A DNA stretch of 64,000 nucleotides from Dimorphilus gyrociliatus. Lineage: Eukaryota > Animalia > Annelida. A program made the position numbers and the translations under genes. The DNA lies in contig CAJFCJ010000017.1 in the NCBI GenBank assembly GCA_904063045.1, positions 124,001 to 188,000 of the forward strand, in the 5' to 3' direction. Positions 7,972-64,000 of this stretch are shown in pieces. Under the pieces are notes generated by a model that saw only the letters and a list, made by a program, of their open reading frames with translations, had not been told where the DNA came from and did no database searches. The first letter of the stretch is position 1. Each line of letters opens with the position of its first letter.

Positions 7972-8002
<31 letters not shown>

Positions 8003-18429: not shown

Positions 18430-18986
18430 AGAAAAGAGAGGGAAAAAAAGGCTGACTACAGAAGCCGATCTTATCGAATTTGTCAATAAATATTACATTT
18501 GATTTTTAGGGTAAAAGAGAAAATGACTGTGTATTTCGATATAGCAGTATTTTCTGATTGTTTAAAAGAGTATATCTATATCAGTAGATACTGTATATAG
18601 TATATTCCTCCGCCTATAGGACCATAGTAAAAATGTATAACCTGAATTGTCGTAATCGGGATTTATCTTATCAAAAGACTTGATTTTTTTTACATAAAAA
18701 GATATATCAAGGAATATTGGAATTACTTTCTGGATTTTTGTTATCAAAAGTAAACTAGTGCTGTAGATTTATAGATACGGTTGTAGATAAACCATATATA
18801 TATATGTATATATGGATTTGTTACAAGATTTCTGTATTATCAGAAGCTTATTACTGAATTTATTGGCCAAGTTTGAGTACCTTTTTCAAGCGTATTTTTT
18901 ATCTGTCTATATAGACTCTTTTCTTTTTACTTCCTCACTGTTAATAAATATATTCAGTTTATTAGAATGAAATAAAACAAAACGTA

Positions 18987-18998
18987 CGCCACCTAGTG
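18987..18998 (-). promoter_or_regulatory. CTCF-like motif upstream of the CXorf65-like gene
   Basis: CGCCACCTAGTG is CACTAGGTGGCG on the minus strand, about 120 bp upstream of ATG 19115. Confidence 0.45.
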
Positions 18999-19114
18999 TT
19001 ATTTGGTAATGACTCTTTTTAATTTGTGTCCTTAGCTCTTTTTTGAGACAAAAAATAACATAAAAGTGGTGCAACTACATCAAATTAATTAACGATAATA
19101 AATGACTGAAACCA

Positions 19115-20085
19115 ATGGCAATGTTTGTGGAGGTTCGCTACGGACGTTAGTTAACGATTAATTTATGTATAAATGTCTTGTTTGATATTAATAATAGAAA
19201 ATATATATATACATATACATATATATAAAATAACAGACAATCAAACTGAAATATTCAACGCCGAATGTAGAAATTTCATCTTATTACAAAATATTAAAGA
19301 GAGATTGGATTACACTACAGAAAGTAAATTATATATTCTATATACTTCTTTTACTGTACAGTATATAATTTTTATGTATATGCTTACTAATATAAATTTA
19401 TTTTAAATATATGGCTATCTATATACAATATACAATATTATAGTACAGTGTATATTTATTCTTTATAGTATTCTGTTTATCTAAGCTATTTTACGGTACA
19501 TAACGTATTAAATTATATTTTCTCGTAGATCATTAGTTCTACCGCAAAATTTATATATACTGTATTGTAAAAGTATATAAGGATATTGTATTGTTGCTGT
19601 TGTTATTGTTTCTTATTATCTTACCAATTCCATTCTCTTTCTTTAGTTGATCTGTCTGACGAGAATGGTATGGTAAAAAATCTTAGAAATTTCCCTACTG
19701 AATACGCGTCAAAGTTTGTCGATTCAAGGGAATCGTTGATTCTATTGCAAGTGAACGGTATACGATTAATACACTTTGTGATTTAATGAATTTACCCTAT
19801 GTATATTGTCTATTATAGAAGACCAAAGTTTTGTACCCTTATTATCTGATTATGATAACGACAACGAATTCTTAGGTAAGTAAAAAAGTCACCTGGTAAT
19901 CAATTCAATTTTAACAATTAACTGACTTTACTCAAGCTAAATTAAATCCAAATTCATTAACCTCTTCTCCGACATCATTCAATAAATCAAGAAGATCTTC
20001 GCTTAGGCGTTCGTCAATCAAGACTGGAAGAAAGAGTTTAATGCAAAGAAGGGATAGTAGGATATCTTTAAAAGGTAAAAATTGA
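19115..20085 (+). CDS. CXorf65/C22orf15-family protein, about 144 aa, 5 exons
   Basis: Exons 19115-19145, 19237-19323, 19647-19757, 19819-19875 and 19937-20085, all GT-AG phase 1. Product: MAMFVEVRYGHNQTEIFNAECRNFILLQNIKERLDYTTEIDLSDENGMVKNLRNFPTEYASKFVDSRESLILLQVNEDQSFVPLLSDYDNDNEFLAKLNPNSLTSSPTSFNKSRRSSLRRSSIKTGRKSLMQRRDSRISLKGKN. It resembles human CXorf65 as recalled (MFIFIKHGDNQQFLVNTNC...IDLC...EYASKYLTARSTYYVCKVE...FVPLL) with a basic tail. An alternative last exon 20577-20653 via donor 20075 is also in phase. Confidence 0.8.
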
Positions 20086-45238: not shown

Positions 45239-47671
45239 ATGGATCTATTTAAATTAACTGATGATAAAGAATTAACAAATATAACTAGTCAAGAATGTAT
45301 TGAATGTTTGGATTATATTATTTCAAGTAAGAGAGAGAGAGAGAGAGAGAGAGAGTGAATCGTAATTTCTCATTTCGTAAACATATCTTTATTCTCCTTT
45401 CTTTCAGATCCTATTCTAAATTGTAACGACGATGGCTATACTATTCTAAGTAATATCTATAATTTATTACGTCATTTCTCTAAAGTCTATGACATTCAGG
45501 TATAAAAATTCAAAAGCTCTGCCTCTCTCTCTTTATACTGTATACATAACCAATTTGTATTTGATAGAAAAAAGGTCTTTTTAGCCTAAGATCATTATTC
45601 CTTCATTATCCCTCTTCCGTGCAATACATTGGTTATCAAGCTAATCAGTAAGTTAATTAATAATTTTTATTCCAGCCTTCTGTTGTTATTTCCGTTTTGT
45701 TACCTTAAAATAAAGAGTACCTATACACGATTTCGTCATAAATTCAATAAGAGTAACGGATGTGAGAAACTATGAATATTTTGGAGCTTTATGCGACCTA
45801 ATTTATCATATTGCGGCAGATAATGGTTTATTTTCTCTTCTATAAATTAGTTTTTTAATTAGTTAATTAATTAATTATTTTTTGTACTCATACCAATTTT
45901 CAATTCATTTTAAGGTGTTATGCAATTAGCTTTTATGAATAAGAACGTTCATCGTTTATTGAATAAGAGGCTGCACGAAGCGTTACCAGCTTTAAGAATA
46001 AATATAATACGATCGCTAAGAGCTTTATGCCTATTCAGGTAAACTTTTCAAAGATGCTAAGTATTAAGAAATTCTAACGAAAATTTCGTTATTTTTGTCA
46101 TTTTTAAGCTTTGAACATAAAGAACAATTAATCAAGCTTGATTTCCATAAAAAAGCCTGTAAAATCCTTAAGGAATCGGCTCCTCCCACAGATTTGATAA
46201 TTAATTGCGTAGCTTTGGTTGCTAGTTTATGCGACAATGGTAAGTTTTAGAGGATTTTAATGAAACACCGCATTTTTTTCTATTCAAACCTTATGAATTC
46301 TCTATGATGAATTAATCTAAAAAATAACCTTCCCTTCCCTCTCTTCCCAACACAACAGATATTGCAAGAGATTACTGCGTAAAAAATGAATTAATAAAGC
46401 AAACGTGCCAACTTTTAGAGGATTGCGAGTCAATTCCACTTAAGGAAGTTGTGATGGAATTTTGGTGTATATGTTTACTTTCCGGTTCGTTTCAATCGTC
46501 GGATATTCTTTAATTGACAAAATTTATATTTTTGTCGTTCTTCTATCTCAATTCCTTTCTTATTGCTATCGTCATTATTATTCTTCTCATTCTCTTCCTC
46601 CTTCCTTATTCTCATAAACGTTTTTTAATTTTTAGAAAATCCGATCGATTCAAACGATGTGATAAGATGTTGTTCTATAAGAATAATTCCTTATATTCTT
46701 AACGAAAATCTTAATTTAGGTAAAACATATCCTCTATATATCATATATAAGTAATAATACTGCATATACTGTATAACATAGTAAATGTCTAATCTTAATT
46801 GCAGTCTTTCATTTCAAATGCGTTCAGTCATTAAACCTCTTAATAGACTCAGACACGAGTGTCCCTCAAAATGTCATTGCCGTCTTAAAGCTTGGTTTCA
46901 AATCTAATTGGCTACCGCTAATCTCAGAATCCTTAGCTTTATTATCTCTACTTTGCCAAGTGAAAAGAAACGTTCTACGTGGGGAAGAACAAGAGTTTAT
47001 TAACCTTTTAGTATGCCACTACGAGAATTTACCAGATGAGAATAGTAATTAGACAGTTAAATAAAACTATTACATATACCATATATATACTGTATATATA
47101 TAGTATATCTTTATCTTGAAACCGCATTATTAGCTCTTATATATTTTATGCGGTTTCCTCCCTTTATCGTTACCTTATATTGTATATTCGTGTACTTTGT
47201 GTTATTTAGATTTAAAGGAAACAATGGAAATTAGTATTTGGTATTTGATACAGGATTCAGTCACCCTAAAATCTCTTTTAAACTCTTCAGTAGAGCAAAA
47301 GAATTATACGGTTAATTAATTAATTCCCCTTTTAACAAGAGAATTTTCTTATCATTATCATCCTGTTTTCTCCCAGCTTGCCCATTGTCTTATACTGTTG
47401 GAAAAGGATAAGAAATTAGCTCTTCAATACGCACTTCGTATGAGAGATTTTCCGTTATGTAAAACCCTTTTGCAACACGTAAGTAGAAAGGTTTATTGAA
47501 ATTATTACCAATTCAGAAGTGTTTGTTCTTTTCAAGGGTACAAACCATTCATCAAAAGAAATTGTAGCAGATTTTCTAAAGGAAGGAGATAATGATTTGA
47601 TTTCATTAGTTTTGAAAAACTTTGGCTACTTTCCAAAAGGTTTCTCTTTCAATTGCTTTAAGATATATTGC

Positions 47672-47721
<50 letters not shown>

Positions 47722-48020
47722 TTTATGTATACTGTAATTCAATGGATAAAGAGGGGGAAACAATTCTTCTTAATTAAAATCTTAATGAATTGTTTTTTTT
47801 TTAAAAAAAAATGAAGATCAAGCTCTTAGATGGTGTAATTTTCAATTGGATAATCTGCAACCGGAATGGATAATTAAAGCATTATCAAAAGATATTTATG
47901 AACCTTCATTATCGGGTAAACCAAATACAATAAAACTCAAGTACAATAACCAGAGAGTAATTTATTTTTCTATCTCTTTCTCTGTATGTCTGTTTCTCGC
48001 TCTCTCTTTCTCTCTCTCCT

Positions 48021-48060
<40 letters not shown>

Positions 48061-51000
48061 CCTTAGAAATGGGAAAATATTTAACTTTACAACTACAAAG
48101 GGTATCTGAAAAAATTGAAAAGGAACAACACGTTCAAAGACCAAAATCCAGTAAACTGAAATTCAAGTTACCCGTCTTTAGACACGGTTTGTTCCATTCG
48201 TTCAATATTTAGGTAATATTCTTCTCCATCATTGTAGAATATGTCTTTCTAAAGGATCGGTCGCCAGTCGAGAAGGTATTGAATTTAGAAGGCAATCTCT
48301 AGCAAATAGTTTTCCACCATTAACGTCAAAACGCAACTTAAATCGTCAATATTCGGATAAAATTTATAGAAATATGGCGCAAAGAATGATATTTGTTTTC
48401 GACAAAGAAGAATACGAGTTTTGGAGGAGTTCGAGTATCAGTTCATGTCAAGTAGCCTTCAACGCTCAATACGATATTCGATTTCGTTATAAAAACGATA
48501 GCGATAAATATGTCATGTCGATTGAGGAAGCAAGTAAGAGAATAATCGAAATATTCATTAATTTCTTTAAATGTCATTGAATTAAATAAGCTATAATATA
48601 GATGTTATTTGGAAAAGAAGAAGTTTTGGTTTCTCCCAAGAGAGAGACTATAATTTGTCAAATATCTCCCAATTAGAATCGTTAGAAGAGAGTTTAATGA
48701 TAGATTCGCAAGATAATGAAAATAACCGTCCATTTCGCTATAAATCTAATGAGGATTTAGATACGTCTTACGAAGAGCTGGCAAAGAGCGATTGTAGTCT
48801 AGAACTTTGCGAAAATGTACGAAAACATAATTCCTATAGAGAAGAGAGAAAAAATTTAAATATCAAAAAGATAATCGAAGAGAAAAAGTCCAAAAGTTTT
48901 ATGGCGTTAGGTATAACTAACCATTATTCAACTACACGTATATTGTATACATTTCTTATTCTCTTCTTCCTCTTCTCCTTCGATGGTAAAAGGAAAAGAT
49001 GGTAGATTTAGATCAAGCACTTTGGATAGGGAAATCAACATCTCCTCTCAAAACCAAATAAGCAGTTTTGATCTATCTTTGAATAATTTAACTTCCTTAA
49101 ACTTTCTAAAAGTTCCAAGTCTAAAACCATACATTTCCAACATTTCGTATATTAACGCAAGTGGTAATAAGATAGGGAAAATTCCTGTTGAAATGTTTAG
49201 AAACTTGCCCCTACTTAAAGAACTTGACTTGTCGAATAACGAAATAGAAGAATTACCAAACAGTTGGACTTGTCATAGATCGTTGGAAAGTATCAACTTG
49301 AGTAATAATAGAATAGAATCTATAAATTACAGTCAAGTTTGTATGAGCTTAACGGAATTGTTAGTGGCAAGTAACAAAATTAAATTATGGCCTCAACAAA
49401 TAGCCAAGATATTTCCAATGTTAAAAATATTAGATCTATCAATGTAACTAACAATAGACTTTATTATCTTTAATATACTAATCTAATTATTCAACAGGAA
49501 TCATATTCAACTTTTACCTAACAAATGCATTGATTTAAGACTTCTTACTAATTTATCAATTAGTAATAATCACTTGAAAATCATACCCGAATACTTTCTA
49601 AGACACTTTCTAAGTATAGAAACTTTAAAATTATGCAATAACTTAATAGGTAGGCCTATTTGTATATAGTTTATATTATTGGATTATATATTTATTTATA
49701 TTCTCCATCACGACAATTAGAATATCTTCCTAGCAGCGAAACTGCTCACAAACTCCTTAAATTAACTCATTTAAAATTGGCTAATAACAAGATTAACTGC
49801 TCAAAAACAAATTTGACGTCATTTGCCTTTATTCTTGCTCTGCCCAACTTACGAACGCTTGACGTTTCTAGCAACGAAATATACTATCTACCGAGACCTT
49901 CGCTATGGATAAGCCGTAGTTTGACCGAACTGCTATTATCCCATAATTCTATTGAGAAGGTAGAAATACTCGTCGCCTATTTAGGTTATGTATTCCCTCT
50001 ATTGTTATTATCTAATCAATATTCTATTTAAGATTGATATAAATCACAACGAAGCAAAAGATTGGCGAAAAATAGAAAGGATAGATTTATCATTTAACAA
50101 TTTAAAATGTATATCTAAAGAAATTGGACATTTGACAAATTTGGCGTCACTTAATCTAAGTAACAACCCTTCAATTAAGTCTATGCCAGACGAACTAGGA
50201 AGATTATGCCATCTATGGGAATTCCCAACAACTAATTTAAATTTAGACTTACCCGATACAATAATTAATGGTAGAACAAGGGATTTAATAAAATTTTTAA
50301 ATCAAAAACTCAGGAAATCGAAATGTTTGAATCAAGTGAGATTAATAATAGTTGGAGATGAAAAAAGCGGTAAAACATCAATAGCGAATAGATTAATGTG
50401 TAGTAGCGGTAATAGTAAACAAAATGTAAAAAATCCATTTAATATATGTGGAATGTTTGTCTCGGAATGGAAACCTTTTAGTCGGAAATATATAATATCA
50501 ATATGGGATATGTTCGGAGGAGAGGACGTCTATTCAATAAACATGAAATTCTTTTCAAAGAGAGCAGTCTATATAGTAAATATTTTGAATATATAGTTAA
50601 ATCACCTTTCATTGTCCTACATACTTGTTTACCCTTTGAATAGATAGCAATAAATTTGTTAGAAGAAGAAGGATGTTGGAAGAAATCATTAAAGAAATGG
50701 TCATGTAATATTTACAGTAAATCTCCTTACTGTCAAATAATTGTTGCGGCAACTCATCTGGATAGAATTCTACCAAAAATTCGTACGAAAACTGTTAGTA
50801 ATTTATTCAAGATTGTACGAAAAGAGATATCTAACGCGAATTTCGGAGTTGTTAAAGAGATTGTTGTGCTCGATGCGAGTAGAAATAATCCCGGTACAAA
50901 TTTATTAAAACAATCGGTTCTAAATACCTTTGACAGGTAGATTGTTTACGTTTAATTAATTAAAATTCAATTAAGCCTATTATTCCCTTATAAAGGTATG

Positions 51001-54000
51001 AAGTAAGTGGTCAAAAGGTAATTGAAGAAAAAGTTCCTGCCGCTTACATTGTAAGTTATACATCAATTCCTCATTAACTATTTATTCATTAGTCTCTTAA
51101 TTAAAATTATAGAAACTTTGGAGTTTATTAATAGGCTCATGCGGTAAAAAGAATATCATAACTCATAATGAACTAAGAGAGATGGTAAAATCTAGTTCCC
51201 TTGACCTATTTGAATCAGAAATACGACAAGCGGGTAGATTTCTTCACGATACTGGCTGCATATTGTATTTTAGTAAAGATATGCCAAATTTATACTTTCC
51301 CTGCCCTTTAATTCTCTGCAATATCCTTTCCGATTTCCTCACCTCAAATCCTATATCAACTGTCTCTACTACGGCAATAATAGATTCGAAAAGTGTACAT
51401 GACGCAGCCAAACAAATTAACTTACCTGAAGAGATGAGAGGGCAATCTATAAATGCCCTTTTAAAATTTGAATTAATCATTCCAGTTTGGGAGGATCAAT
51501 ATTTATTGCCAATTAAACTGGACAAACATTTTAATAGATATCAAGACTTTCTAATAGAATACGGAAAGGACGAAAATGTTATAGGAGCAAAATATATTTG
51601 TACGTTTATACCCTTTGGATTTTGGCCTAAATTATTAAGTTTTCTACTTAGTCAAGTAGATAAAACTGTTCCAAAGGTATATTAATAAATCATTACGTAT
51701 TTATTTCTAATTTTACGCTATCAATCCAAAAAATGGAGATTAAAGTGATAATAATAGTTGCATTTTTCTAGGAAAACCTTCATTACTGGAACGCAGGAAT
51801 TTTAATAATCCTATCTAAAGTATTTTATATTCTTTCTTTCTTTCTTTCTCTCTCTCTCTCTCTCTCTCATTTCTTCTATCGTTTCTAGGAAGACTTTTAT
51901 AGTATTAAAATCGACAACGACAATCTAATTATAAGCGTTAAGCAATCTGTAAACGCTTATAGAACTCTGGCCAACATCATTGGAAAGATTGAAACGCTCT
52001 TCAATGAATGGTACCCGAATCTTCTTACAAGAGATGGTTTTGGTGTGCAACACGTTACAAGGGTTGCTTTGTGCACAAAGTGCCAACATTCGTTCGACGT
52101 CGAATCTATCGAAGAAATATCTTGTCATAAAGATAACATTTGGTGTCCAGATCACCGCGATTTCGTAATTATAAACTAACATTTTCCCTACTAGTTAGCG
52201 CCATCTGTATTATGTTTTAAACAAACTCTTCAGATTTTATTGGAAGATCTAGTACCGGATTTTTATTTGAAATTTCTAGAGAAGCACTTGTTATTTGATA
52301 AAAACGATACGAATTTTAATGAAAAGTTTGTATTGTTTCCATATTTATAAACTATGTAAATCAATAGACATTTAACTAATGACAATAAAACTTTTGAACG
52401 TTTCCAGAAGCTCAAAGAGCTTAGGTTATGGAGCGTTTAGTAGAGTATTCAAGTCATTATTGAAAAAGAGACATGTTGCTGCAAAGGTCTATTCTAAAAA
52501 GGCAAGGGGACAAGTTATGTATGAGTTGTTAATACTAAGTACAATTAGACATTCTTCGATTATTGAATTATACGGTATATTACCAAAACCACCAATAATA
52601 TTCCTTCAATTGGCTCCGAAGGGATCTTTAACCGATATTTTAAAAGAGAATTTATCAACTTGCCTAAAACTACAAATATGCTTGGAAATTATAGAGGGTG
52701 TTGAAAAATTACACAATTCTAATATCATCTACAGAGACCTTAAACCAGACAATATCCTAGTCTTTTCTTTAGACAAAACCGACGGTATTCATATTAAATT
52801 AACTGATTTTGGAATTGCCCGATGGGTACCACCCTTCGGCTTAAAATCAAATGAAGGAACTCCTGGCTACAGGGCACCGGAAATTATAAATACCGTGATA
52901 TATTCGTTTATGGTATACATAATTTAAGTAAACAAAGATAGAAAGCTAAATAAAAGCATCTCCCTTAGGCCGATGTATTTTCCTATGGAATTACGATTTA
53001 TCAACTATTTTACAATGGGAAACATCCTTTTGGAGATGCTCATTTTCCAGCCCAATTGGAAGATTCTATTGTTGAGGTATATTAAATACTATTATATCTA
53101 TAATATATTAGTATATATACAATTGTCGTTGTTTTTAAGCTATCGGATTCTAGCCCGTTAATAAGATACGACTCTCATTGGATAGGCATTCAATCGTTAA
53201 TTGGTTCATGCTTAGCAAGCCAACCGGAGAAACGGTAATGTGTTTTTAATATATAGAATATAAGTTATATTGTTTGATTTATTCTGTTCACTTCTCTTAC
53301 CCAAACAAACAAACAAACAAACAACAAAACACAGATGGAAACCCAATAAAATAATTGAATATTTAAATAAAGATTCCATTTTGGGATTAAGATCTCCGGT
53401 TCCAATCTCGGAGAATGTTGCTGTTGAATGTTGTTGCGTCACTCCAGAAGGATTTTTATTTATGGCCTGTTGCAGTGAGGAAACTGTTTATGTACAAAAA
53501 GTCGACACAATTAACAGACAGTCGCAGGTTTTTTTTTCCTTTATCCTTTAAACAAAGGAAAATTTATCAACTAATAATGCATTAACTATCTTCTTAAATA
53601 ACATTATAGGGTATTCACATTCCTGACAAACGGTTTATCTGTGTTTGTCATTTCGACGAAAGGGTAATATTCGGAAGTCAATCGGGGTTATTATGGATCT
53701 TTACTGTCAAAAGTCTACAAAAGAATCATTATATTAATTCAACTGGTGATGCTATTGTCTGTCTTTTAACCGTAGCTCAACAGTTAGTCTATAATAGAAA
53801 TTCTTATGATTCACCTTTCCTTCTAAAAAGCTAATAGGAAATTCTTTTTTTCATTAATTTTCTATTGAAAGGTCAAGTCCAAAGCTTTTAGTTGGCTTTG
53901 CCGACGGAAGCGTTTCTTCCTACAATCTTAGAGATGTATTATCCGTAAGAGCCTACTTTATCTCGAATTATTTTCCATTCGTTTAACGCAACTTCTATGA

Positions 54001-54624
54001 AATAAATAGGATTCTACAACAATACCTTTGCAAGTAATACGAACTGGAAGAAATTGCATACACGCATTATCTCCGATGGATAGAAGGGGTTCTAAGATAG
54101 CTATTGCCTGCGGTTCGGAAATTAAAATATTATACAACCAACAAGGATTTTACAATATATTCGATCACGTTAATTCGAGCAACAGCAATAGAATAATTGG
54201 GTTAGAATGCTGCAGAAATACCATAATTGTTTGTAGGAGGAACAGCGTTACATTAGAAAAATGGTCTGGTAGGTCTAAAGAAAGAAGGAAGTTAATAGAC
54301 GCCTACGATTGTTCTCATATCGTCTCATCGATTCATCTTACCAAAGTCACCTTGTGGATTGGCAATAAGAATGGCCAAATAAATTTACTGAACGCCGTCG
54401 ATTTTAAACCTTTACTATGCGTACAAGCTCATTACGATTCCGTTAAGGTGCTTTGCTCCGGCTACGGATACGTCATTTCCTGTGGATACGGATGGGAAGA
54501 TGAAGGAGAAGGAAAACTATCGGACTGTAGCTATGTTTTAGTTTGGGATCAAGATTTTGGACAAATATATGAGCAATTTCGTAAATATCAAATATTAAGA
54601 AAAGAATCATCTATACAATCGTAA
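45239..54624 (+). CDS. LRRK2: Leucine-rich repeat kinase 2-like ROCO kinase (ARM-ANK-LRR-ROC-COR-kinase-WD40), multi-exon
   Basis: About 30 short exons traced approximately. Helical ARM-like repeats about 45239-47024; ANK-like about 47377-47640; LRRs 48983-50300; ROC P-loop IVGDEKSGKTS (50354-50380), WDMFGGEDVY and THLD; COR FIPFGFWPKLL and ETLFNEWYPNLL; kinase LGYGAFSRVF, VAAK, YRDLKPDNIL, TDFGIA, EGTPGYRAPE, ADVFSYG; WD40; C-terminal VLVWDQDFGQIYEQFRKYQILRKES resembling LRRK2 LTVWDINLPHEVQNLEKHIEVRKE. The start codon is uncertain; extra 5' exons from about 44700 are possible. Confidence 0.9.
47675..47720. repeat. (TA)23 microsatellite in an LRRK2-like intron
   Basis: Uninterrupted TA run of 46 nt. 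Confidence 0.9.
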
Positions 54625-55254
54625 ATAGCAGACTTTTAAAAGACTAAAGAACAGTAAAAGCTCCCTACATAACACTGACCAAATGGATTTTTAATACAAT
54701 TTGCGTAATTATTAATTGATATTTACGTAAAAACATGATAAAGACTTTCAATCGCCAAAATAGACCTAAATGTCTCTAGGGTTTTTGTCAATATTATGTA
54801 AACACATGTAAATATGTAGTAGATGGATACTACTTTACTCTTTGTTCATCATCAAATGTCATAAATTTGATCAGCAGATATAGTAATAATCGAAGATTCG
54901 TATAAAACACTAGGCTGGCCAGAAAGAGGAAAAGGAGGAGGAGGAGGAGGAGGAGGAGGAGACGAGAAAGAACAACTAAATAATAGCTGAATTAATGAAC
55001 AAATAAAAGAATATTGATGTAAAAACAAAAAAACCAACTGAAATATTGAAAGAAAGAAGAAAACAAATTGAAAAAAAGGAAAATATTGTCAAATATTAAT
55101 GAAATAAAGCATTTTCCATATCGTCTTATTATTGTAGATAACCGTGAATATTCATTGGACAGCGGGGTGGGGGGAGGAAAGAGGGAGGGAGGACCAGAGT
55201 GAATTGTTTATTCATTCTATAACTGTTCATCCTATCGATTGAATAGCAGCCTGT

Positions 55255-55290
<36 letters not shown>

Positions 55291-56969
55291 GAATAAAAAG
55301 GAAAAAGATTTTAACGATTCATAATTTTTTTTCTCCTATTGAACAAATGTAATGATTGAATAGGGAAGAAACCATAGTAATTTAAGATTTACTAGCTACG
55401 GGACAAATGTTATGGCTGTTACCTTTAGCAAATACATATTTATATTAAATTTTAAGATCTATTGATAAAATTATTTCTAACGTTTTAACCATAAAGAGAA
55501 TGATTTATGATTAGGGAACAATCGACTAATCCAGCATCAATAATAATGATAATAAGTTTCATAAATGTCTAATTAGACAATTGTTAGTAGGCAATAAAAG
55601 TAAAAATGATCTTGTACAAGCTAAAAATTGAACGGGACGAGTTCAATTTGTCAATAGTTCCTCGGTTAATTTTCTTATTTTTGAATATCATTATAAAATT
55701 TTTAGTAGTACAAATAAATAACGAATAGACTTATTGATTACAGAATATTTATACAATTAAGTAATACTTCTAAACAATAGAATAATTTATTATCACGATT
55801 TTTGAAAAGGCTCTCTTATAGATGAGGTTATACTGGAATAGAAAGACAGATAATACAATTCTATTATTAGGCCTATAAAAGTATATAAAAGACAAACTCT
55901 CAAGAGCTAGTAGATAGAAACATTGTCAAACTATAAATATCGATCGTTGTTATACAGTATTATTTGATTGTCGATAAGAGACTTTTACATTGGAATTATA
56001 AATAGTAAATAGGGTAAAAGAGAGCAAGATATGATGCTAAACTAAAAGTTCTCTATAGTCTTGTTTGTTTATATAAAGAAACAAAAACAAAATCATAAAA
56101 AAACTCACACTAATAAATGATAATAAACAGAAAGAAATCAATAGAAAAGTCAGAAATAATTAAGATATGGCAAAGGCATTATAAATTATATACAAATAGA
56201 AAACTATTATATTTAATACTACTTTCAGATCTCTACCCGATATTACTGTTCCACCACCACTTTATATATAAATAATAATTGCTTGTCTTCGATTCAAAAC
56301 ATACAAAACATTCATTATGTCACATGACATGCTTTTTTATTCAAAGCTAATAGAACGACTTGTGCAAGCAACGCATGGTAAGTTTTCTAGATTATTTCAA
56401 CATATTCTATAATAAACTTTTAAAATATTCAATGCAAGTTATAGATTGTAGCATTCATTTTTAAATTCTAGCTTTGACCTTTGCAAACAGAAATTTATGA
56501 ATATTCATAATGAAATTTTTAAGAATATATTAATAAATCATTAAAAAAATTGCAGACTAAAACTGCAATAATTATTCGTTTATTCCTTAACTATTGTATT
56601 AAATTTTATTTAACTCGCCTCAAACTGCAAAGATGGGAATAAACAAAGAGAAAGAGAGAGAAGTGGCTAAAACTTAAAAAAAATTAAAAAAACAAGTTTA
56701 ATTAATAATTAATATAAATATTCATTAAGTCATTAATTCTTAAGAAAAAGCATTAAACAACATATAAATATTATTACGTTACTTGGTTTCATATGTCAAT
56801 TCTATTGATAATTTTACATTATTAACTCTTTCGGGAGCTGATCTGTCTAAAGTTGGATCAAACCGGTAAGGAGGATATACTTCTCATTAAACATCTTTTC
56901 ATTTTTAACCATTTCTCTATCATTTTACTCTTTGTCCATGATAAAAAACACATTTCTTTTTTGCAGATA

Positions 56970-59900
56970 ATGAAATCAAATCTCTTACATCCTTCCGAAA
57001 AAACAATCACTATTCATTTTCAATTATCTCTCTTTTGCATCTTAATATTTCTCATTAATACTAGCAGTAGTAACTTATCATGTTCAAATGATCAAGTTCC
57101 TTGTTTGAAAACAAACACATGCGTCCCAAAACAACAATTCCGTGAACAAGAATGTAAAGTCACTTGTGAAAACAATCAGAAATTTTGTGAAAAACAAAAT
57201 AAATGCATTCAAGAGGCAAACTATACAGTCAAAGACTGCCAATCACAACAACAATGTCCTCAAGATGAAAAACTCTGCATGAAAACACAAACATGTGTTG
57301 CTGATAAGGATTTCAAAGAAGAAGATTGCAGACCAGAATGCGAAAACGGAAAGAAATTCTGTATGATGAGAAAGTCTTGCATTGATGAAGCAAGTTACAA
57401 AGAAGACGACTGCAAACAAATGCCTCACTGTACTTCAGATGAAAAGTATTGTATGAAGACAAAAGAATGTGTTGCTGTTAAAGATTTTAAGGAGGATGAA
57501 TGCAGACCAGATTGTGAAAATGGAAAGAAATTCTGTATGATGAGAAAGGCTTGCATTGATGAAGCAACATTCAAGGAAGATGACTGCAAACCAATGCCTC
57601 ACTGTACTTCAGATGAAGAGTATTGCCTGAAGACAAAGGCATGTGTTGCTGTTAAAGATTTCAAGGAGGATGAATGCAGACCAGATTGTGAAAATGGAAC
57701 GAAATTCTGTATGATGAGAAAGTCTTGCATTGATGAAGCAAGTTACAAAGAAGACGACTGCAAACCAATTCCACAATGTGGTCAGGATGAAAAGTATTGT
57801 ATGAAGACCAAGGCATGTGTAGCTGTTAAAGATTTCAAGGAGGATGAATGCAGACCAGATTGTGAAAATGGAACAAAATTCTGTATGATGAGAAAGTCTT
57901 GCATTGATGAAGCAAGTTACAAAGAAGATGACTGCAAACCAATGCCTCACTGTACTTCAGATGAAAAGTATTGTATGAAGACAAAGGCATGTGTTGCTGT
58001 TAAAGATTTCAAGGAAGAAGATTGCAGACCAGAATGTGAAAATGGAAAGAAATTCTGTATGAGACAAAAAGCTTGCATTGATGAAGCAAGTTACAAAGAA
58101 GATGACTGCAAACCAATGCCACAATGTGGTCAGGAGGAAAAGTATTGCCTGAAGACAAAGGCATGTGTTGCTGTTAAAGATTTCAAGGAAGAAGATTGCA
58201 GACCAGAATGTGAAAATGGAAAGAAATTCTGTATGAGAAGAAAGGCTTGCATTGATGAAGCAAGTTACAAAGAAGACGACTGCAAACCAATGCCACAATG
58301 TGGTCAGGATGAAAAATATTGCCTGAAGACAAAGGCATGTGTTGCTGTTAAAGATTTCAAGGAGGATGAATGCAGACCAGATTGTGAAAATGGAACGAAA
58401 TTCTGTATGATGAGAAAGTCTTGCATTGATGAAGCAAGTTACAAAGAAGACGACTGCAAACCAATTCCACAATGTGGTCAGGATGAAAAGTATTGTATGA
58501 AGACAAAGGCATGTGTTGCTGTTAAAGATTTCAAGGAAGAAGATTGCAGACCAGAATGTGAAAATGGAACAAAATTCTGTATGAGACAAAAAGCTTGCAT
58601 TGATGAAGCAACCTACAAAGAAGACAACTGCAAACCAATGCCACAATGTGGTCAGGAGGAAAAGTATTGTATAAAGACCAAGGCATGTGTTGCTGTTAAA
58701 GATTTCAAGGAAGAAGATTGCAGACCAGAATGTGAAAATGGAAAGAAATTTTGTATGATGAGAAAGGCTTGCATTGATGAAGCAACATTCAAGGAAGATG
58801 ACTGCAAACCAATGCCTCACTGTACTTCAGATGAAAAGTATTGCCTGAAGACAAAGGCATGTGTTGCTGTTAAAGATTTCAAGGAAGAAGATTGCAGACC
58901 AGAATGTGAAAATGGAAAGAAATTCTGTATGAGACAAAAAGCTTGCATTGATGAAGCAACCTACAAAGAAGACAACTGCAAACCAATGCCACAATGTGGT
59001 CAGGAGGAAAAGTATTGCATGAAGACAAAAGAATGTGTTGCGGTTAAAGAATTTAAGGAGGATGAATGCAGACCAGATTGTGAAAATGGAAAGAAATTTT
59101 GTATGATGAGAATGGCTTGCATTGATGAAGCAAGTTACAAGGAAGATGACTGCAAACCAATGCCTCACTGTACTTCAGATGAAAAGTATTGTATGAAGAC
59201 AAAAGAATGTGTTGCTGTTAAAGATTTTAAGGAGGATGAATGCAGACCAGATTGTGAAAATGGAAAGAAATTTTGTATGATGAGAATGGCTTGCATTGAT
59301 GAATCAAGTTACAAAGACGACTGCAAACCAATGCCTCACTGTACTTCAGATGAAAAGTATTGTATGAAGACAAAGGCATGTGTTGCTGTTAAAGATTTCA
59401 AGGAAGAAGATTGCAGACTAGAATGTGAAAATGGAAAGAAATTCTGTATCAGAATAAAAGCTTGTATTGATGAATCAAGTTACAAAGAAGATGATTGCAA
59501 ACCAATGCCACAATGTGGTCAGGAGGAAAAGTATTGTATAAAGACCAAGGCATGTGTTGCTGTTAAAGATTTCAAGGAAGAAGATTGCAGACCAGAATGT
59601 GAAAATGGAAAGAAATTCTGTATGAGAAGAAAGGCTTGCATTGATGAAGCAAGCCATAAAGAAGATGACTGCAAACCAATGCCACAATGTGGTCAGGATG
59701 AAATGTATTGTATGAAGACCAAGGCATGTGTAGCTGTTAAAGATTTCAAGGAAGAAGATTGCAGACCAGAATGTGAAAATGGAAAGAAATTCTGTATGAG
59801 AAGAAAGGCTTGCATTGATGAAGCAAGTTACAAAGAAGACGACTGCAAACCAATGCCACAATGTGGTCAGGAGAAAAAGTATTGTATAAAGACCAAGGCA

Positions 59901-62900
59901 TGTGTTGCTGTTAAAGATTTCAAGGAAGAAGATTGCAGACCAGAATGTGAAAATGGAAAGAAATTCTGTATGAGAAGAAAGGCTTGCATTGATGAAGCAA
60001 GTTACAAAGAAGACGACTGCAAACCAATGCCACAATGTGGTCAAGATGAAAAATATTGCATGAAGACCAAGGCATGTGTAGCTGTTAAAGATTTCAAGGA
60101 AGAAGATTGCAGACCAGAATGTGAAAATGGAAAGAAATTCTGTATGAGACAAAAAGCTTGCATTGATGAAGCAACCTACAAAGAAGCTGACTGCAAACCA
60201 ATGCCACAATGTGGTCAGGATGAAAAGTATTGTATAAAGACCAAGGCATGTGTTGCTGTTAAAGATTTCAAGGAAGAAGATTGCAGACTAGAATGTGAAA
60301 ATGGAAAGAAATTCTGTATCAGAATAAAAGCTTGTATTGATGAATCAAGTTACAAAGAAGATGATTGCAAACCAATGCCTCACTGTACTTCAGATGAAAA
60401 GTATTGCCTGAAGACAAAGGCATGTGTTGCTGTTAAAGATTTCAAGGAAGAAGATTGCAGACCAGAATGTGAAAATGGAAAGAAATTCTGTATGAGAAGA
60501 AAGGCTTGCATTGATGAAGCAAGCTATAAAGAAGATGACTGCAAACCAATGCCACAATGTGGTCAGGATGAAAAGTATTGTATGAAGACCAAGGCATGTG
60601 TAGCTGTTAAAGATTTCAAGGAAGAAGATTGCAGACCAGAATGTGAAAATGGAAAGAAATTCTGTATGAGAAGAAAGGCTTGCATTGATGAATCAAGCTA
60701 TAAAGAAGATGACTGCAAACTAATGCCACAATGTGGTCAAGATGAAAAGTATTGCATGAAGACCAAGGCATGTGTTGCTGTTAAAGATTTCAAGGAAGAA
60801 GATTGCAGACCAGAATGTGAAAATGGAAAGAAATTCTGTATGAGAAGAAAGGCTTGCATCGATGAAGCAAGTTACAAAGAAGATGACTGCAAACCAATGC
60901 CACAATGTGGTCAAGATGAAAAGTATTGCATGAAGACCAAGGCATGTGTAGCTGTTAAAGATTTCAAGGAAGAAGATTGCAGACCAGAATGTGAAAATGG
61001 AAAGAAATTCTGTATGAGAAGAAAGGCTTGCATCGATGAAGCAAGTTACAAAGAAGACGACTGCAAACCAATGCCACAATGTGGTCAAGATGAAAAGTAT
61101 TGCATGAAGACCAAGGCATGTGTTGCTGTTAAAGATTTCAAGGAAGAAGATTGCAGACCAGAATGTGAAAATGGAAAGAAATTCTGTATGAGAAGAAGGG
61201 CTTGCATCGATGAAGCAAGTTACAAAGAAGACGACTGCAAACCAATGCCACAATGTGGTCAAGATGAAAAGTATTGCATGAAGACCAAGGCATGTGTTGC
61301 TGTTAAAGATTTCAAGGAAGAAGATTGCAGACCAGAATGTGAAAATGGAAAGAAATTCTGTATGAGAAGAAAGGCTTGCATTGATGAATCAAGCTATAAA
61401 GAAGATGACTGCAAACTAATGCCACAATGTGGTCAGGATAAAAAGTATTGCATGAAGACAAAAGAATGTGTTGCTGTTAAAGATTTCAAGGAAGAAGATT
61501 GCAGACCAGAATGTGAAAATGGAAAGAAATTCTGTATGAGAAGAAAGGCTTGCATCGATGAAGCAAGTTACAAAGAAGACGACTGCAAACCAATGCCACA
61601 ATGTGGTCAAGATGAAAAGTATTGCATGAAGACCAAGGCATGTGTTGCTGTTAAAGATTTCAAGGAAGAAGATTGCAGACCAGAATGTGAAAATGGAAAG
61701 AAATTCTGTATGAGAAGAAAGGCTTGCATTGATGAATCAAGCTATAAAGAAGATGACTGCAAACTAATGCCACAATGTGGTCAAGATGAAAAGTATTGCA
61801 TGAAGACCAAGGCATGTGTTGCTGTTAAAGATTTCAAGGAAGAAGATTGCAGACCAGAATGTGAAAATGGAAAGAAATTCTGTATGAAAAGAAAGGCTTG
61901 CATTGATGAATCAAGCTATAAAGAAGATGACTGCAAACTAATGCCACAATGTGGTCAGGATAAAAAGTATTGCATGAAGACAAAAGAATGTGTTGCTGTT
62001 AAAGATTTCAAGGAAGAAGATTGCAGACCAGAATGTGAAAATGGAAAGAAATTCTGTATGAGAAGAAAGGCTTGCATCGATGAAGCAAGTTACAAAGAAG
62101 ATGACTGCAAACCAATGCCACAATGTGGTCAAGATGAAAAGTATTGCATGAAGACCAAGGCATGTGTAGCTGTTAAAGATTTCAAGGAAGAAGATTGCAG
62201 ACCAGAATGTGAAAATGGAAAGAAATTCTGTATGAGAAGAAAGGCTTGCATCGATGAAGCAAGTTACAAAGAAGACGACTGCAAACCAATGCCACAATGT
62301 GGTCAAGATGAAAAGTATTGCATGAAGACCAAGGCATGTGTTGCTGTTAAAGATTTCAAGGAAGAAGATTGCAGACCAGAATGTGAAAATGGAAAGAAAT
62401 TCTGTATGAGAAGAAAGGCTTGCATCGATGAAGCAAGTTACAAAGAAGACGACTGCAAACCAATGCCACAATGTGGTCAAGATGAAAAGTATTGCATGAA
62501 GACCAAGGCATGTGTTGCTGTTAAAGATTTCAAGGAAGAAGATTGCAGACCAGAATGTGAAAATGGAAAGAAATTCTGTATGAGAAGAAAGGCTTGCATT
62601 GATGAATCAAGCTATAAAGAAGATGACTGCAAACTAATGCCACAATGTGGTCAGGATAAAAAGTATTGCATGAAGACAAAAGAATGTGTTGCTGTTAAAG
62701 ATTTCAAGGAAGAAGATTGCAGACCAGAATGTGAAAATGGAAAGAAATTCTGTATGAGAAGAAAGGCTTGCATCGATGAAGCAAGTTACAAAGAAGACGA
62801 CTGCAAACCAATGCCACAATGTGGTCAAGATGAAAAGTATTGCATGAAGACCAAGGCATGTGTTGCTGTTAAAGATTTCAAGGAAGAAGATTGCAGACCA

Positions 62901-64000
62901 GAATGTGAAAATGGAAAGAAATTCTGTATGAGAAGAAAGGCTTGCATTGATGAATCAAGCTATAAAGAAGATGACTGCAAACTAATGCCACAATGTGGTC
63001 AAGATGAAAAGTATTGCATGAAGACCAAGGCATGTGTTGCTGTTAAAGATTTCAAGGAAGAAGATTGCAGACCAGAATGTGAAAATGGAAAGAAATTCTG
63101 TATGAAAAGAAAGGCTTGCATTGATGAATCAAGCTATAAAGAAGATGACTGCAAACTAATGCCACAATGTGGTCAGGATAAAAAGTATTGCATGAAGACA
63201 AAAGAATGTGTTGCTGTTAAAGATTTCAAGGAAGAAGATTGCAGACCAGAATGTGAAAATGGAAAGAAATTCTGTATGAGGAGAAAGGCTTGTATTGATG
63301 AAGCAACATACAAGGAAGATGACTGCAAGCCAATTACTGAGTGCACTTCAGATGAAAAGTATTGCATGAAGACCAAGGCGTGTGTTGCTGTGAAAGATTT
63401 TAAGGAGGAAGACTGTAGAGTTGAATGTGAAAATGGAAAGAAATTTTGTATGAGAAGGAAGGCTTGCATTGACGAAGCAACCTATAAAGAAGATGACTGC
63501 AAACCGATTACTCAGTGTGCTCAAGACGAAAAGTACTGCATGAAAACAAAGAAATGCGTTGCTCAGGAAGATTATAAGGAAGTTGATTGTAAAGCAATAG
63601 CGAATTGTGGTTCAAATGAAAAATTTTGTTTGAAAACTAAGAAATGTATTGCTGTTGAATTGTTCAAGGAAGAAGATTGCAAAACTGTTTCGCTGATTTG
63701 CCCTGTTGTTGCAGGAGGTAAAGATGCTGGAACTTGTGGTGCAGTTTGCAAAGATGAGAATGATTGCGGTGCAGGAAAAATTTGTTGTACTAGTGCATGC
63801 GGTGGAAAGACTTGTACTGATGGAGAAAATAGTAATAAACCCATTGGTTTATTAATATATAAAAATGATAAAACAACGTTAGAGTCTTTGGTTTCGAGCA
63901 TTAAAGTTGTTGGTGGAGAAGCCAATAATCTTCTTTTTAAACTAAAGTCGAAGACCTCAGTGTCTCTAAGTGTTACTGAAAAAGATTCAACTAATAATGA
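56970..64000 (+). CDS. Giant secreted cysteine-rich tandem-repeat protein with a WAP domain; at least 2343 aa, 3' end beyond the window
   Basis: Acceptor TTGCAG at 56966, ATG 56970. MKSNLLHPSEKTITIHFQLSLFCILIFLINTSSS (signal-peptide-like hydrophobic core), then repeats. The frame was checked at 57081, 59280, 59340, 60000, 61200, 62400, 63000 and 63540, with no stop seen up to 64000. It is absent from the ORF track because it lacks a stop in the window. Confidence 0.93.
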   Translation, partial: MKSNLLHPSEKTITIHFQLSLFCILIFLINTSSSNLSCSNDQVPCLKTNTCVPKQQFREQECKVTCENNQKFCEKQNKCIQEANYTVKDCQSQQQCPQDEKLCMKTQTCVADKDFKEEDCRPECENGKKFCMMRKSCIDEASYKEDDCKQMPHCTSDEKYCMKTKECVAVKDFKEDECRPDCENGKKFCMMRKACIDEATFKEDDCKPMPHCTSDEEYCLKTKACVAVKDFKEDECRPDCENGTKFCMMRKSCIDEASYKEDDCKPIPQCGQDEKYCMKTKACVAVKDFKEDECRPDCENGTKFCMMRKSCIDEASYKEDDCKPMPHCTSDEKYCMKTKACVAVKDFKEEDCRPECENGKKFCMRQKACIDEASYKEDDCKPMPQCGQEEKYCLKTKACVAVKDFKEEDCRPECENGKKFCMRRKACIDEASYKEDDCKPMPQCGQDEKYCLKTKACVAVKDFKEDECRPDCENGTKFCMMRKSCIDEASYKEDDCKPIPQCGQDEKYCMKTKACVAVKDFKEEDCRPECENGTKFCMRQKACIDEATYKEDNCKPMPQCGQEEKYCIKTKACVAVKDFKEEDCRPECENGKKFCMMRKACIDEATFKEDDCKPMPHCTSDEKYCLKTKACVAVKDFKEEDCRPECENGKKFCMRQKACIDEATYKEDNCKPMPQCGQEEKYCMKTKECVAVKEFKEDECRPDCENGKKFCMMRMACIDEASYKEDDCKPMPHCTSDEKYCMKTKECVAVKDFKEDECRPDCENGKKFCMMRMACIDESSYKDDCKPMPHCTSDEKYCMKTKACVAVKDFKEEDCRLECENGKKFCIRIKACIDESSYKEDDCKPMPQCGQEEKYCIKTKACVAVKDFKEEDCRPECENGKKFCMRRKACIDEASHKEDDCKPMPQCGQDEMYCMKTKACVAVKDFKEEDCRPECENGKKFCMRRKACIDEASYKEDDCKPMPQCGQEKKYCIKTKACVAVKDFKEEDCRPECENGKKFCMRRKACIDEASYKEDDCKPMPQCGQDEKYCMKTKACVAVKDFKEEDCRPECENGKKFCMRQKACIDEATYKEADCKPMPQCGQDEKYCIKTKACVAVKDFKEEDCRLECENGKKFCIRIKACIDESSYKEDDCKPMPHCTSDEKYCLKTKACVAVKDFKEEDCRPECENGKKFCMRRKACIDEASYKEDDCKPMPQCGQDEKYCMKTKACVAVKDFKEEDCRPECENGKKFCMRRKACIDESSYKEDDCKLMPQCGQDEKYCMKTKACVAVKDFKEEDCRPECENGKKFCMRRKACIDEASYKEDDCKPMPQCGQDEKYCMKTKACVAVKDFKEEDCRPECENGKKFCMRRKACIDEASYKEDDCKPMPQCGQDEKYCMKTKACVAVKDFKEEDCRPECENGKKFCMRRRACIDEASYKEDDCKPMPQCGQDEKYCMKTKACVAVKDFKEEDCRPECENGKKFCMRRKACIDESSYKEDDCKLMPQCGQDKKYCMKTKECVAVKDFKEEDCRPECENGKKFCMRRKACIDEASYKEDDCKPMPQCGQDEKYCMKTKACVAVKDFKEEDCRPECENGKKFCMRRKACIDESSYKEDDCKLMPQCGQDEKYCMKTKACVAVKDFKEEDCRPECENGKKFCMKRKACIDESSYKEDDCKLMPQCGQDKKYCMKTKECVAVKDFKEEDCRPECENGKKFCMRRKACIDEASYKEDDCKPMPQCGQDEKYCMKTKACVAVKDFKEEDCRPECENGKKFCMRRKACIDEASYKEDDCKPMPQCGQDEKYCMKTKACVAVKDFKEEDCRPECENGKKFCMRRKACIDEASYKEDDCKPMPQCGQDEKYCMKTKACVAVKDFKEEDCRPECENGKKFCMRRKACIDESSYKEDDCKLMPQCGQDKKYCMKTKECVAVKDFKEEDCRPECENGKKFCMRRKACIDEASYKEDDCKPMPQCGQDEKYCMKTKACVAVKDFKEEDCRPECENGKKFCMRRKACIDESSYKEDDCKLMPQCGQDEKYCMKTKACVAVKDFKEEDCRPECENGKKFCMKRKACIDESSYKEDDCKLMPQCGQDKKYCMKTKECVAVKDFKEEDCRPECENGKKFCMRRKACIDEATYKEDDCKPITECTSDEKYCMKTKACVAVKDFKEEDCRVECENGKKFCMRRKACIDEATYKEDDCKPITQCAQDEKYCMKTKKCVAQEDYKEVDCKAIANCGSNEKFCLKTKKCIAVELFKEEDCKTVSLICPVVAGGKDAGTCGAVCKDENDCGAGKICCTSACGGKTCTDGENSNKPIGLLIYKNDKTTLESLVSSIKVVGGEANNLLFKLKSKTSVSLSVTEKDSTNN
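57081..63680 (+). repeat. Coding minisatellite: 37 x 174 bp (one unit 171 bp) plus two extra half-unit modules
   Basis: Unit consensus CGQDEKYCMKTKACVAVKDFKEEDCRPECENGKKFCMRRKACIDEASYKEDDCKPMPQ (58 aa, 8 Cys). 57081 to 63515 is 6435 nt = 37x174 - 3, with the 3-nt deletion at about 59316. Two further 4-Cys modules start at 63516 and 63606. Confidence 0.95.
63699..63815 (+). other. WAP (four-disulfide core) domain within the giant Cys-rich ORF
   Basis: CPVVAGGKDAGTCGAVCKDENDCGAGKICCTSACGGKTC: 8 Cys in the WAP spacing CP-xn-GxC-x3-C-x5-C-x5-CC-x3-CG-x3-C. Confidence 0.85.

Follow-up and report, generated by a model that had tools for sequence, protein, structure and literature searches.

What does a long tandem repeat with an intact reading frame encode, and is its product a free polymer or one part of something larger? 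We address this question for a repeat array at the right-hand end of a 64,000-nucleotide (nt) stretch of the genome of the annelid Dimorphilus gyrociliatus (forward strand of contig CAJFCJ010000017.1, assembly GCA_904063045.1, positions 124,001–188,000). We refer to this whole stretch as the window, and coordinates are given in the window unless stated otherwise. An initial annotation, made from the sequence alone, had proposed that a single exon in this region encodes a giant secreted polymer of 76 four-cysteine modules, capped by a WAP domain, and that it is a candidate for an undescribed system. Here, we show that the modules are protein-coding and that they belong to a much longer annotated product, P0002, of 4,574 residues, which includes a REJ domain and is predicted to be anchored in the membrane. 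The reading that we favor, to which we assign a probability of about 0.6, is that P0002 is a REJ-family (polycystin-1/receptor-for-egg-jelly) type I protein in which the array serves as a stalk or tether.

Results

The repeat exon opens a longer annotated gene

The plus-strand frame that contains the repeats starts at 56826 and meets no stop before it runs off the window, whose last full codon ends at 63998; its first Met codon is at 56970. A locus look-up places the gene on CAJFCJ010000017.1 of GCA_904063045.1, where the public annotation holds two unnamed models, P0002 (4,574 residues) and P0001 (3,417 residues), which share a 90% cluster (NCBI/UniRef). P0002 is identical to the window open reading frame (ORF) across all 2,343 residues of the latter and continues for 2,231 further residues past the window. 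Its first coding exon, which had been described as a single giant exon of more than 7 kb, is indeed one exon and has a full length of 8,169 nt (8.17 kb; 2,723 residues), from 56970 to the equivalent of 65138. The latter corresponds to position 18764 of locus L001, in which the gene start, position 10001, equals window position 56375. The gene had also been called invisible to the list of ORFs drawn up for the window; this is true, and it simply reflects the fact that the ORF runs off the window end.

Mapping of P0002 onto L001 reveals five more exons after the large one. The introns are 56–250 nt in length, four of the five measuring 56–76 nt and the last ~250 nt. The first intron is 56 nt, and its retention would lead to a stop 37 codons on, ending the protein at residue 2760 without a membrane anchor. 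Extension of the contig to obtain the C-terminus, a step that the initial annotation had suggested, thus yields the 4,574-residue product with its REJ domain, one transmembrane helix and a tail, all described below. At the other end, the start Met of P0002 begins a signal peptide or N-terminal leader (residues 1–37; 56970–57080, plus strand) with the hydrophobic core FQLSLFCILIFLI, which appears as a hydropathy segment at residues 11–31.

Model P0001 differs from P0002 in two respects. It starts upstream (N-terminus MIMKSN), at an ATG mini-exon (56375–56377, plus strand) that is followed by a GT donor at 56378 and joined to the large exon across a 5′ intron (56378–56966, plus strand; donor ATG-gtaagt, acceptor tttttgcag before ATA ATG). 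It also lacks exactly 1,159 residues, or 20 units of the array. Within the ambiguous zone around the junction of this gap (57770–61320), no position offers a GT-AG pair. The alternative isoforms in the GCA_904063045.1 annotation are the output of PASA run on transcript assemblies (PMC7854359), and the 20-unit gap is probably a collapsed short-read transcript assembly aligned by PASA and not a real intron. If so, P0001 points, indirectly, to expression of the gene. A word-based protein search with the whole ORF returned P0001, encoded by the window itself, and nothing else; an exact look-up of P0001 retrieved no record.

The array contains 76 modules in alternating pairs

The array spans residues 38–2237 (57081–63680, plus strand). 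Tandem Repeats Finder reports a period of 174 nt over 57276–63563, with 36.2 copies, 92% matches and 0% indels. When the translation is parsed with a regular expression, 76 modules are counted, 75 of which have the spacing C-x6-C-x5-C-x10-C and one of which has nine residues in the last loop. Two module types, A and B, alternate to form 38 pairs of 58 residues (174 nt), and the linkers alternate accordingly between RPE (three residues) and KPMPQ/H (five residues). The lone B module with C-x9-C lies in a single 57-residue unit (59169–59339, plus strand) and is due to an in-frame deletion of 3 nt, the sole length change in the array. From the Met on, the frame encodes 313 Cys residues: 304 in the modules, eight in the WAP domain and one in the signal peptide. 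None of the four Cys varies among 40 distinct modules, and A and B modules are 35–45% identical. The consensus 58-residue unit contains 13 Lys or Arg and 13 Asp or Glu, and is therefore highly charged and net neutral. These data agree closely with the initial annotation, which had listed a signal peptide, 76 alternating A/B modules with about 304 Cys, intact Cys in the units read, and 13 basic and 13 acidic residues per unit; the shorter loop of one module is the only amendment needed, and all 304 module Cys are kept.

The most diverged modules are the first two and the last two or three, as expected where the interior of an array is homogenized. The unit difference matrix also uncovers a recurrence of six units at a lag of seven units, or 1218 nt (60906–63167, plus strand). 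Units in 60906–61949 reappear at 62124–63167 with 0–1 nt differences each, as compared to 5–20 nt for typical unit pairs, and pairs of minus-strand ORFs 1218 nt apart agree with this duplication. Such near-identity indicates either a very recent higher-order duplication of ~1.2 kb or an assembly artifact. A two-module unit of 174 nt was probably amplified in tandem to give rise to the array, with purifying selection holding every Cys in place; reshuffling is probably still going on, as indicated by the near-identical seven-unit duplication.

The array is coding

One explanation for a long and uniform repeat is that it is a non-coding satellite with a chance open frame, or that an assembly artifact has inflated it. 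Units are very alike, with some identical at lag 7, and the minus strand carries ORFs too, of up to 287 residues, both of which are consistent with this idea. However, the coding frame contains no stops over the array and the other five frames contain 27–209, such that only one frame in six is stop-free over 6.3 kb. Among 35 full units, the pooled ratio of nonsynonymous to synonymous differences per site (pN/pS) is 0.21 (pS 0.26, pN 0.054), and variable columns number 16, 15 and 45 at codon positions 1, 2 and 3, third-position variation being three times that of either of the other positions. All 304 Cys are kept, the lone indel is in frame, and the frame is continuous with the signal peptide upstream and with the WAP domain, REJ domain and transmembrane helix downstream. 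The pS of 0.26 among units further implies that recent duplication in the assembly does not account for most of the copies. Based on the frame-specific stops, pN/pS and codon-position variation, we reject a satellite with a chance ORF, and we regard the satellite or artifact explanation in any form as extremely improbable. The array is coding.

The module is an orphan at the sequence level

Pfam searches with the whole ORF, with a three-unit piece and with 27 distinct AB units, at E ≤ 10, gave nothing significant (best E 0.028). No match to LDLa, EGF, FOLN, antistasin or TIL was obtained with any of the 27 units. The DPY family of Dumpy (PF21164) was seen with four of the 27, at a best E of 1.4, which is noise. 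A public precomputed label, PF10618 'Phage tail tube protein', has a whole-protein E of 8e-51 but is false: no single stretch is significant, and the score is the sum of ~72 sub-threshold repeat matches. Searches of PDB sequences with the array were empty when a single sequence was used, and a profile search gave only G-alpha noise (E 0.4). The earlier view that the module is not a named domain is upheld by these results. Two outcomes had been named beforehand as evidence against the proposal. The first, a confident match to a Pfam repeat family, was not seen; the second was a lack of transcript or peptide evidence, as for a non-coding satellite, and here coding status is clear from pN/pS and the frame-specific stops.

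A search for the module family across metazoans had also been suggested. We searched 1.84 billion representatives with a profile hidden Markov model of the AB unit and recovered the gene itself plus three weak matches only (P0003, P0004 and P0005). P0003 is bacterial, judging by its gene neighbors, and P0004 comes from a Nanoarchaeota metagenome-assembled genome; both were dismissed. P0005 has a profile E of 3e-4 and aligns to the module over the C1–C3 hairpin only (hhalign 92.5%, 21 columns). Proteins of this type form a family of ~23 near-identical members of ~255–293 residues, each with six C-x6-C-x5-C-x5-7-C modules and Ser/Thr/Gly linkers, and this family is the sole eukaryote-like weak relative of the annelid module. 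P0005–P0019 belong to this family, for which locus L002 is a contig of 2197 nt from Logan SRR14864965. By sequence, then, the module is an orphan, with a faint flavor of the LDLa N-terminal lobe.

AlphaFold2 was run on four modules with an alignment of 33 rows, all of them units of this gene, and on a single module with 40 rows in which A and B types were mixed. The predicted local distance difference test scores were 80.3 and 84.2, respectively. In both models, strands flank C2 and C3 of each module, forming a β-hairpin, and a one-turn helix precedes C4. The modules are predicted to be small and independent of one another, much like the beads on a string originally envisaged. We infer that disulfides link C1 to C3 and C2 to C4 within each module. 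With the four-module model, Foldseek found nothing significant, the best matches being LDLa arrays of megalin/LRP2, CD320 and VLDLR (E 0.012–1), with the four-module structure of CREMP (9pgb) at E 5; with the single-module model, no match was better than E 6. Comparison to 48,161 chains with VIA-align picked out only the cysteine-rich domain of BAFF-R, a four-Cys partial TNFR module (Z 2.0 and 2.2), and VIA re-alignment of the Foldseek matches gave no Z ≥ 2. Because the modules have only ~30 residues, these blank structure searches say nothing about the novelty of the fold.

A WAP-type domain, a REJ domain and a membrane anchor follow the array

Just downstream of the array lies a WAP-type four-disulfide-core domain (residues 2244–2282; 63699–63815, plus strand). 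Its eight-Cys signature is intact, with the spacing C-x5-C-x5-CC-x3-C-x4-C, which fits the general WAP pattern C-x5-C-x5-CC-x3-5-C-x3-4-C. The Pfam WAP family (PF00095) narrowly misses its threshold here, at 20.2 bits versus a gathering score of 20.8 (E 7e-4), and the top PDB sequence matches of the stretch are the WAP proteins nawaprin and WCI (E 0.1). Cys spacing and PDB matches thus back the earlier assignment of a WAP domain after the array. The domain does not, however, cap the protein; 2,231 residues follow the window end, and WAP is internal.

A Cys-free region of ~460 residues comes next. It starts at 63816 (plus strand) in the same exon, occupies the window to position 64000 and continues beyond, and it has no Pfam match. 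Between WAP and REJ there is also a Cys-rich region (residues 2780–2900; L001 ~18990–19350) with three CxxCxGG motifs. A word-based search with residues 2560–2960 returned as relatives only mixed proteins with Cys-rich CxxCxGG motifs, some of them with MopE-like PF11617, and no orthologues of this piece.

The REJ domain (PF02010) covers residues ~3427–3820 of P0002 and is detected with an E of 8.9e-15 and 54.7 bits versus a cut-off of 25, over positions 13–399 of the 452-position profile. Further downstream, a C-x-F-W...W...C...C-x-C pattern at residues 4143–4185 resembles GPS by eye; Pfam (E ≤ 10 on the isolated piece) is silent, and no PDB sequence matches. The idea of a SEA domain was dropped, as none is detected by Pfam. 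In the last 2,168 residues, Pfam identified no PLAT domain and no VWD/C8 or other polymerizing end domains. Hydropathy analysis of P0002 identifies two hydrophobic segments only: the signal at the N-terminus and, at residues 4372–4397, a strong helix with a hydropathy of 3.66. The tail that follows this helix, 175 residues in length and Ser/Pro-rich, is predicted to be cytoplasmic and contains a PPPY motif (PPxY-type) at residue 4423. The transmembrane/juxtamembrane stretch gave non-significant matches to beta-dystroglycan (Pfam DAG1, E 0.011; PDB 9c3c_B, E 0.15).

From outside to inside, the order of elements is a signal peptide, the 76-module chain (~2,200 residues), the WAP-type domain, the Cys-free region of ~460 residues, the CxxCxGG region, the REJ domain, the GPS-like Cys/Trp motif, one transmembrane helix and the 175-residue tail. 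The product is thus predicted to be a type I membrane protein whose ectodomain, ~4,340 residues in length, has the array as its membrane-distal part. This changes the initial picture of a secreted polymer, as P0002 runs on through REJ to the helix and tail.

Neighboring genes

Upstream on the plus strand (~46375–54625; L001 1–8250) lies an LRRK2-like gene of at least 2,072 residues, in which Pfam identifies LRR, Roc, COR, kinase and LRRK2 beta-propeller families. Two genes are found past the window end. One (L001 25265–26752, minus strand) encodes 402 residues with no Pfam family; the other (L001 29152–30912, plus strand) encodes a concentrative nucleoside transporter (Nucleos_tra2_N/C). Rfam and tRNA scans of the window were empty.

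Discussion

How might a protein of this kind act? We hold the architecture described above to be very probable, taken by itself. The function that we propose for it is more tentative, with somewhat less than an even chance of being correct: the array would form a long, disulfide-stiffened and flexibly jointed stalk or tether. By analogy with EGF- and CREMP-type modules, each contributing an estimated 2–2.5 nm, the stalk would reach ~150–190 nm if extended. It could project from the cell surface, or it could join that surface to a layer outside the cell, for instance cuticle, glycocalyx, an egg coat or mucus. Close to the membrane, the REJ/juxtamembrane part may then serve as a mechanical or cleavable element, in a manner reminiscent of Dumpy, which tethers fly epidermis to cuticle. 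The alternation of basic and then acidic charge could favor lateral self-association, and the WAP module may act locally to inhibit proteases or to counter microbes.

Giant tandem arrays of two-disulfide modules are a published class of architecture, although the annelid module itself is unclassified. The system is consequently not an undescribed one, as had been suggested, given that CREMP, the DPY modules of Dumpy and Sp185 have been described (PMC12723725) and the gene itself is already annotated. Chicken CREMP is the closest in design. It has 81 consecutive two-disulfide modules (Cx4Cx5Cx8C) in 2,254 residues, with linkers that alternate between 6 and 11 residues (PMC12723725). Each module has C1–C3 and C2–C4 disulfides around a small hairpin, the joints between modules are flexible, and the modules are often annotated as follistatin-N-like; the protein is a secreted fiber protein with VWD/C8 domains at its C-terminal end (PMC12723725). 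Both proteins contain more than 2,000 residues of ~80 consecutive four-Cys modules, each of ~25–30 residues with near-invariant spacing and a small β-hairpin. In both, two module types alternate, linker lengths alternate as well (6/11 in CREMP, 3/5 in the annelid protein), and other domains lie C-terminal of the repeats. On the other hand, the spacings differ (Cx4Cx5Cx8C versus Cx6Cx5Cx10C), and no sequence similarity can be detected, as the profile search returned no CREMP-like protein. In the annelid module, C2 and C3 are predicted to bracket the hairpin and a helical turn to precede C4. Finally, CREMP ends in VWD/C8 and is secreted, whereas the annelid protein ends in REJ and a membrane anchor.

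In this last respect, Drosophila Dumpy offers a better comparison. Dumpy is membrane-anchored, with 185 DPY modules (Cx5Cx5Cx4C), and its filaments run from epidermis to cuticle (PMC12723725). Like the annelid protein, it is a gigantic membrane-anchored extracellular protein made largely of tiny two-disulfide modules (DPY: PDB 1OIG, PF21164), and as a tensile filament linking these two layers it provides the best functional analogy for a tethered rod. It differs in the spacing of its DPY modules (Cx5Cx5Cx4C), between which EGF modules are interspersed, and in its ZP domain, which the annelid protein lacks. Chironomus Sp185, with 64 two-disulfide modules, and octopus octovafibrin, with 29 EGF modules, are secreted structural proteins (PMC12723725). 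These too are proteins of aquatic invertebrates built almost wholly of tandem small disulfide modules; judged by their description and by the blank profile search, they are set apart by other spacings and by the lack of a membrane anchor, REJ or WAP.

As for the membrane-proximal part, the REJ domain is said to define the REJ/PKD1 family, in which GPS lies just upstream of the first transmembrane segment (PMC1934368). Family members have 1–11 transmembrane segments, with PLAT after the first in multi-pass members, and those with a single segment include sea urchin SpREJ1, 8 and 9 (PMC1934368). The annelid protein resembles the latter: its REJ domain scores above the Pfam threshold, a signal peptide precedes its large ectodomain, and its one transmembrane segment lies near the C-terminus, with no PLAT found. 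As to differences, Pfam detects no C-type lectin, EGF, PKD, WSC, GPS or PLAT domain in it, and none of the REJ proteins covered in PMC1934368 carries a WAP domain or begins with 76 four-Cys modules in tandem.

Is the module truly of a new type, or is it a degenerate LDL-receptor class A repeat, reduced to the N-terminal hairpin half, or else a truncated EGF or follistatin-N module? The C1–C3 spacing of C-x6-C-x5-C, the aromatic residue before C2 and the aliphatic residue (Val or Ile) after C3 match the N-terminal hairpin pattern of LDLa (PF00057), and the acidic cluster before the last Cys is another shared feature. The LDLa arrays of megalin/LRP2, CD320 and VLDLR occupy the top Foldseek rows (E 0.012–1), and the nearest weak relative, the P0005 family, itself weakly matches the N-terminal two-thirds of LDLa (Pfam positions 2–27) with an E of 0.03. 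Yet Pfam finds no LDLa, EGF or FOLN in the 27 units even at E ≤ 10. The module has four Cys, not six, and 29 residues, not ~40, and it lacks the D-x-S-D-E calcium-cage motif; structural matches were not significant, with none reaching Z ≥ 2 upon VIA re-alignment. We therefore consider derivation from one of these known modules unlikely. Somewhat better odds, albeit still well short of even, go to the possibility that the C-x6-C-x5-C-x10-C unit represents a two-disulfide module of a new kind, restricted to one lineage, which was born or diverged beyond recognition in Dinophilidae and was amplified to 76 copies to form a stalk of ~150–190 nm on a REJ-type membrane protein. Animals would then have arrived independently at the design of Dumpy and CREMP, here on a receptor of the polycystin family, and the length of the array could set how far the cell lies from an extracellular layer or could transmit tension between them.

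Other functions can be envisaged for the protein as a whole. The array and WAP domain might be released into the egg cocoon, adhesive, mucus or cuticle as a free structural polymer, either because sheddases or cleavage at the GPS-like motif cut the protein close to the membrane or because intron 1 stays in the transcript and brings translation to an early stop. A Lys-rich, Cys-rich tandem two-disulfide design is that of the secreted fiber proteins CREMP and Sp185, REJ/PKD1 proteins are commonly cleaved at GPS (PMC1934368), and read-through of the first intron would generate an anchorless protein ending at residue 2760. But both annotated models include the transmembrane helix and tail, and Pfam detects neither an autoproteolytic GPS or SEA domain nor VWD/C8 or other polymerizing end domains. 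A role in the egg capsule or in adhesion would require shedding of the ectodomain, and we judge a free polymer to be an improbable end product. Less probable still is a gamete-recognition receptor, that is, a REJ protein of the sperm or egg surface like SpREJ1, in which the array would be a fast-evolving, ligand-binding or species-specific region. The combination of a REJ domain and a single transmembrane segment recalls SpREJ1, and the array is lineage-restricted and recently remodeled; however, the units are under purifying and not diversifying selection (pN/pS 0.21), Pfam detects neither the lectin nor the EGF domains that SpREJ1 has, and REJ proteins have many roles outside of gametes (PMC1934368).

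Several caveats apply to the reading that we favor, a REJ-family type I protein with the array as its stalk. The repeat exon is joined to the REJ and transmembrane exons on the basis of the gene model, the continuity of the open frame and the short GT-AG introns, and no orthologue stands behind the join; a word-based search with the C-terminal half, capped at 8,000 candidates, returned only the gene itself. Nor did a word-based search with residues 2560–2960, a piece spanning two exon junctions, find identical RNA-derived fragments. GPS is not detected by Pfam, and the GPS-like motif was read by eye. As units are near-identical, assembly could have affected the copy number. Lastly, since the predicted structures have no significant match, the fold class and disulfide pairing given here are provisional.

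If correct, this reading would add a fourth or fifth independent case in which very long extracellular elements of animals are built from tiny two-disulfide hairpin modules, the earlier ones being the eggshell membrane of birds, Dumpy in flies and the silk of midges. Among these, the annelid array would be the first joined to a membrane protein of the REJ/polycystin family. With a genome of 74 Mb and a single gene, D. gyrociliatus would then offer a compact and genetically tractable system in which to study how such arrays fold, how their copy number is maintained, and whether REJ ectodomains serve as mechanical tethers.

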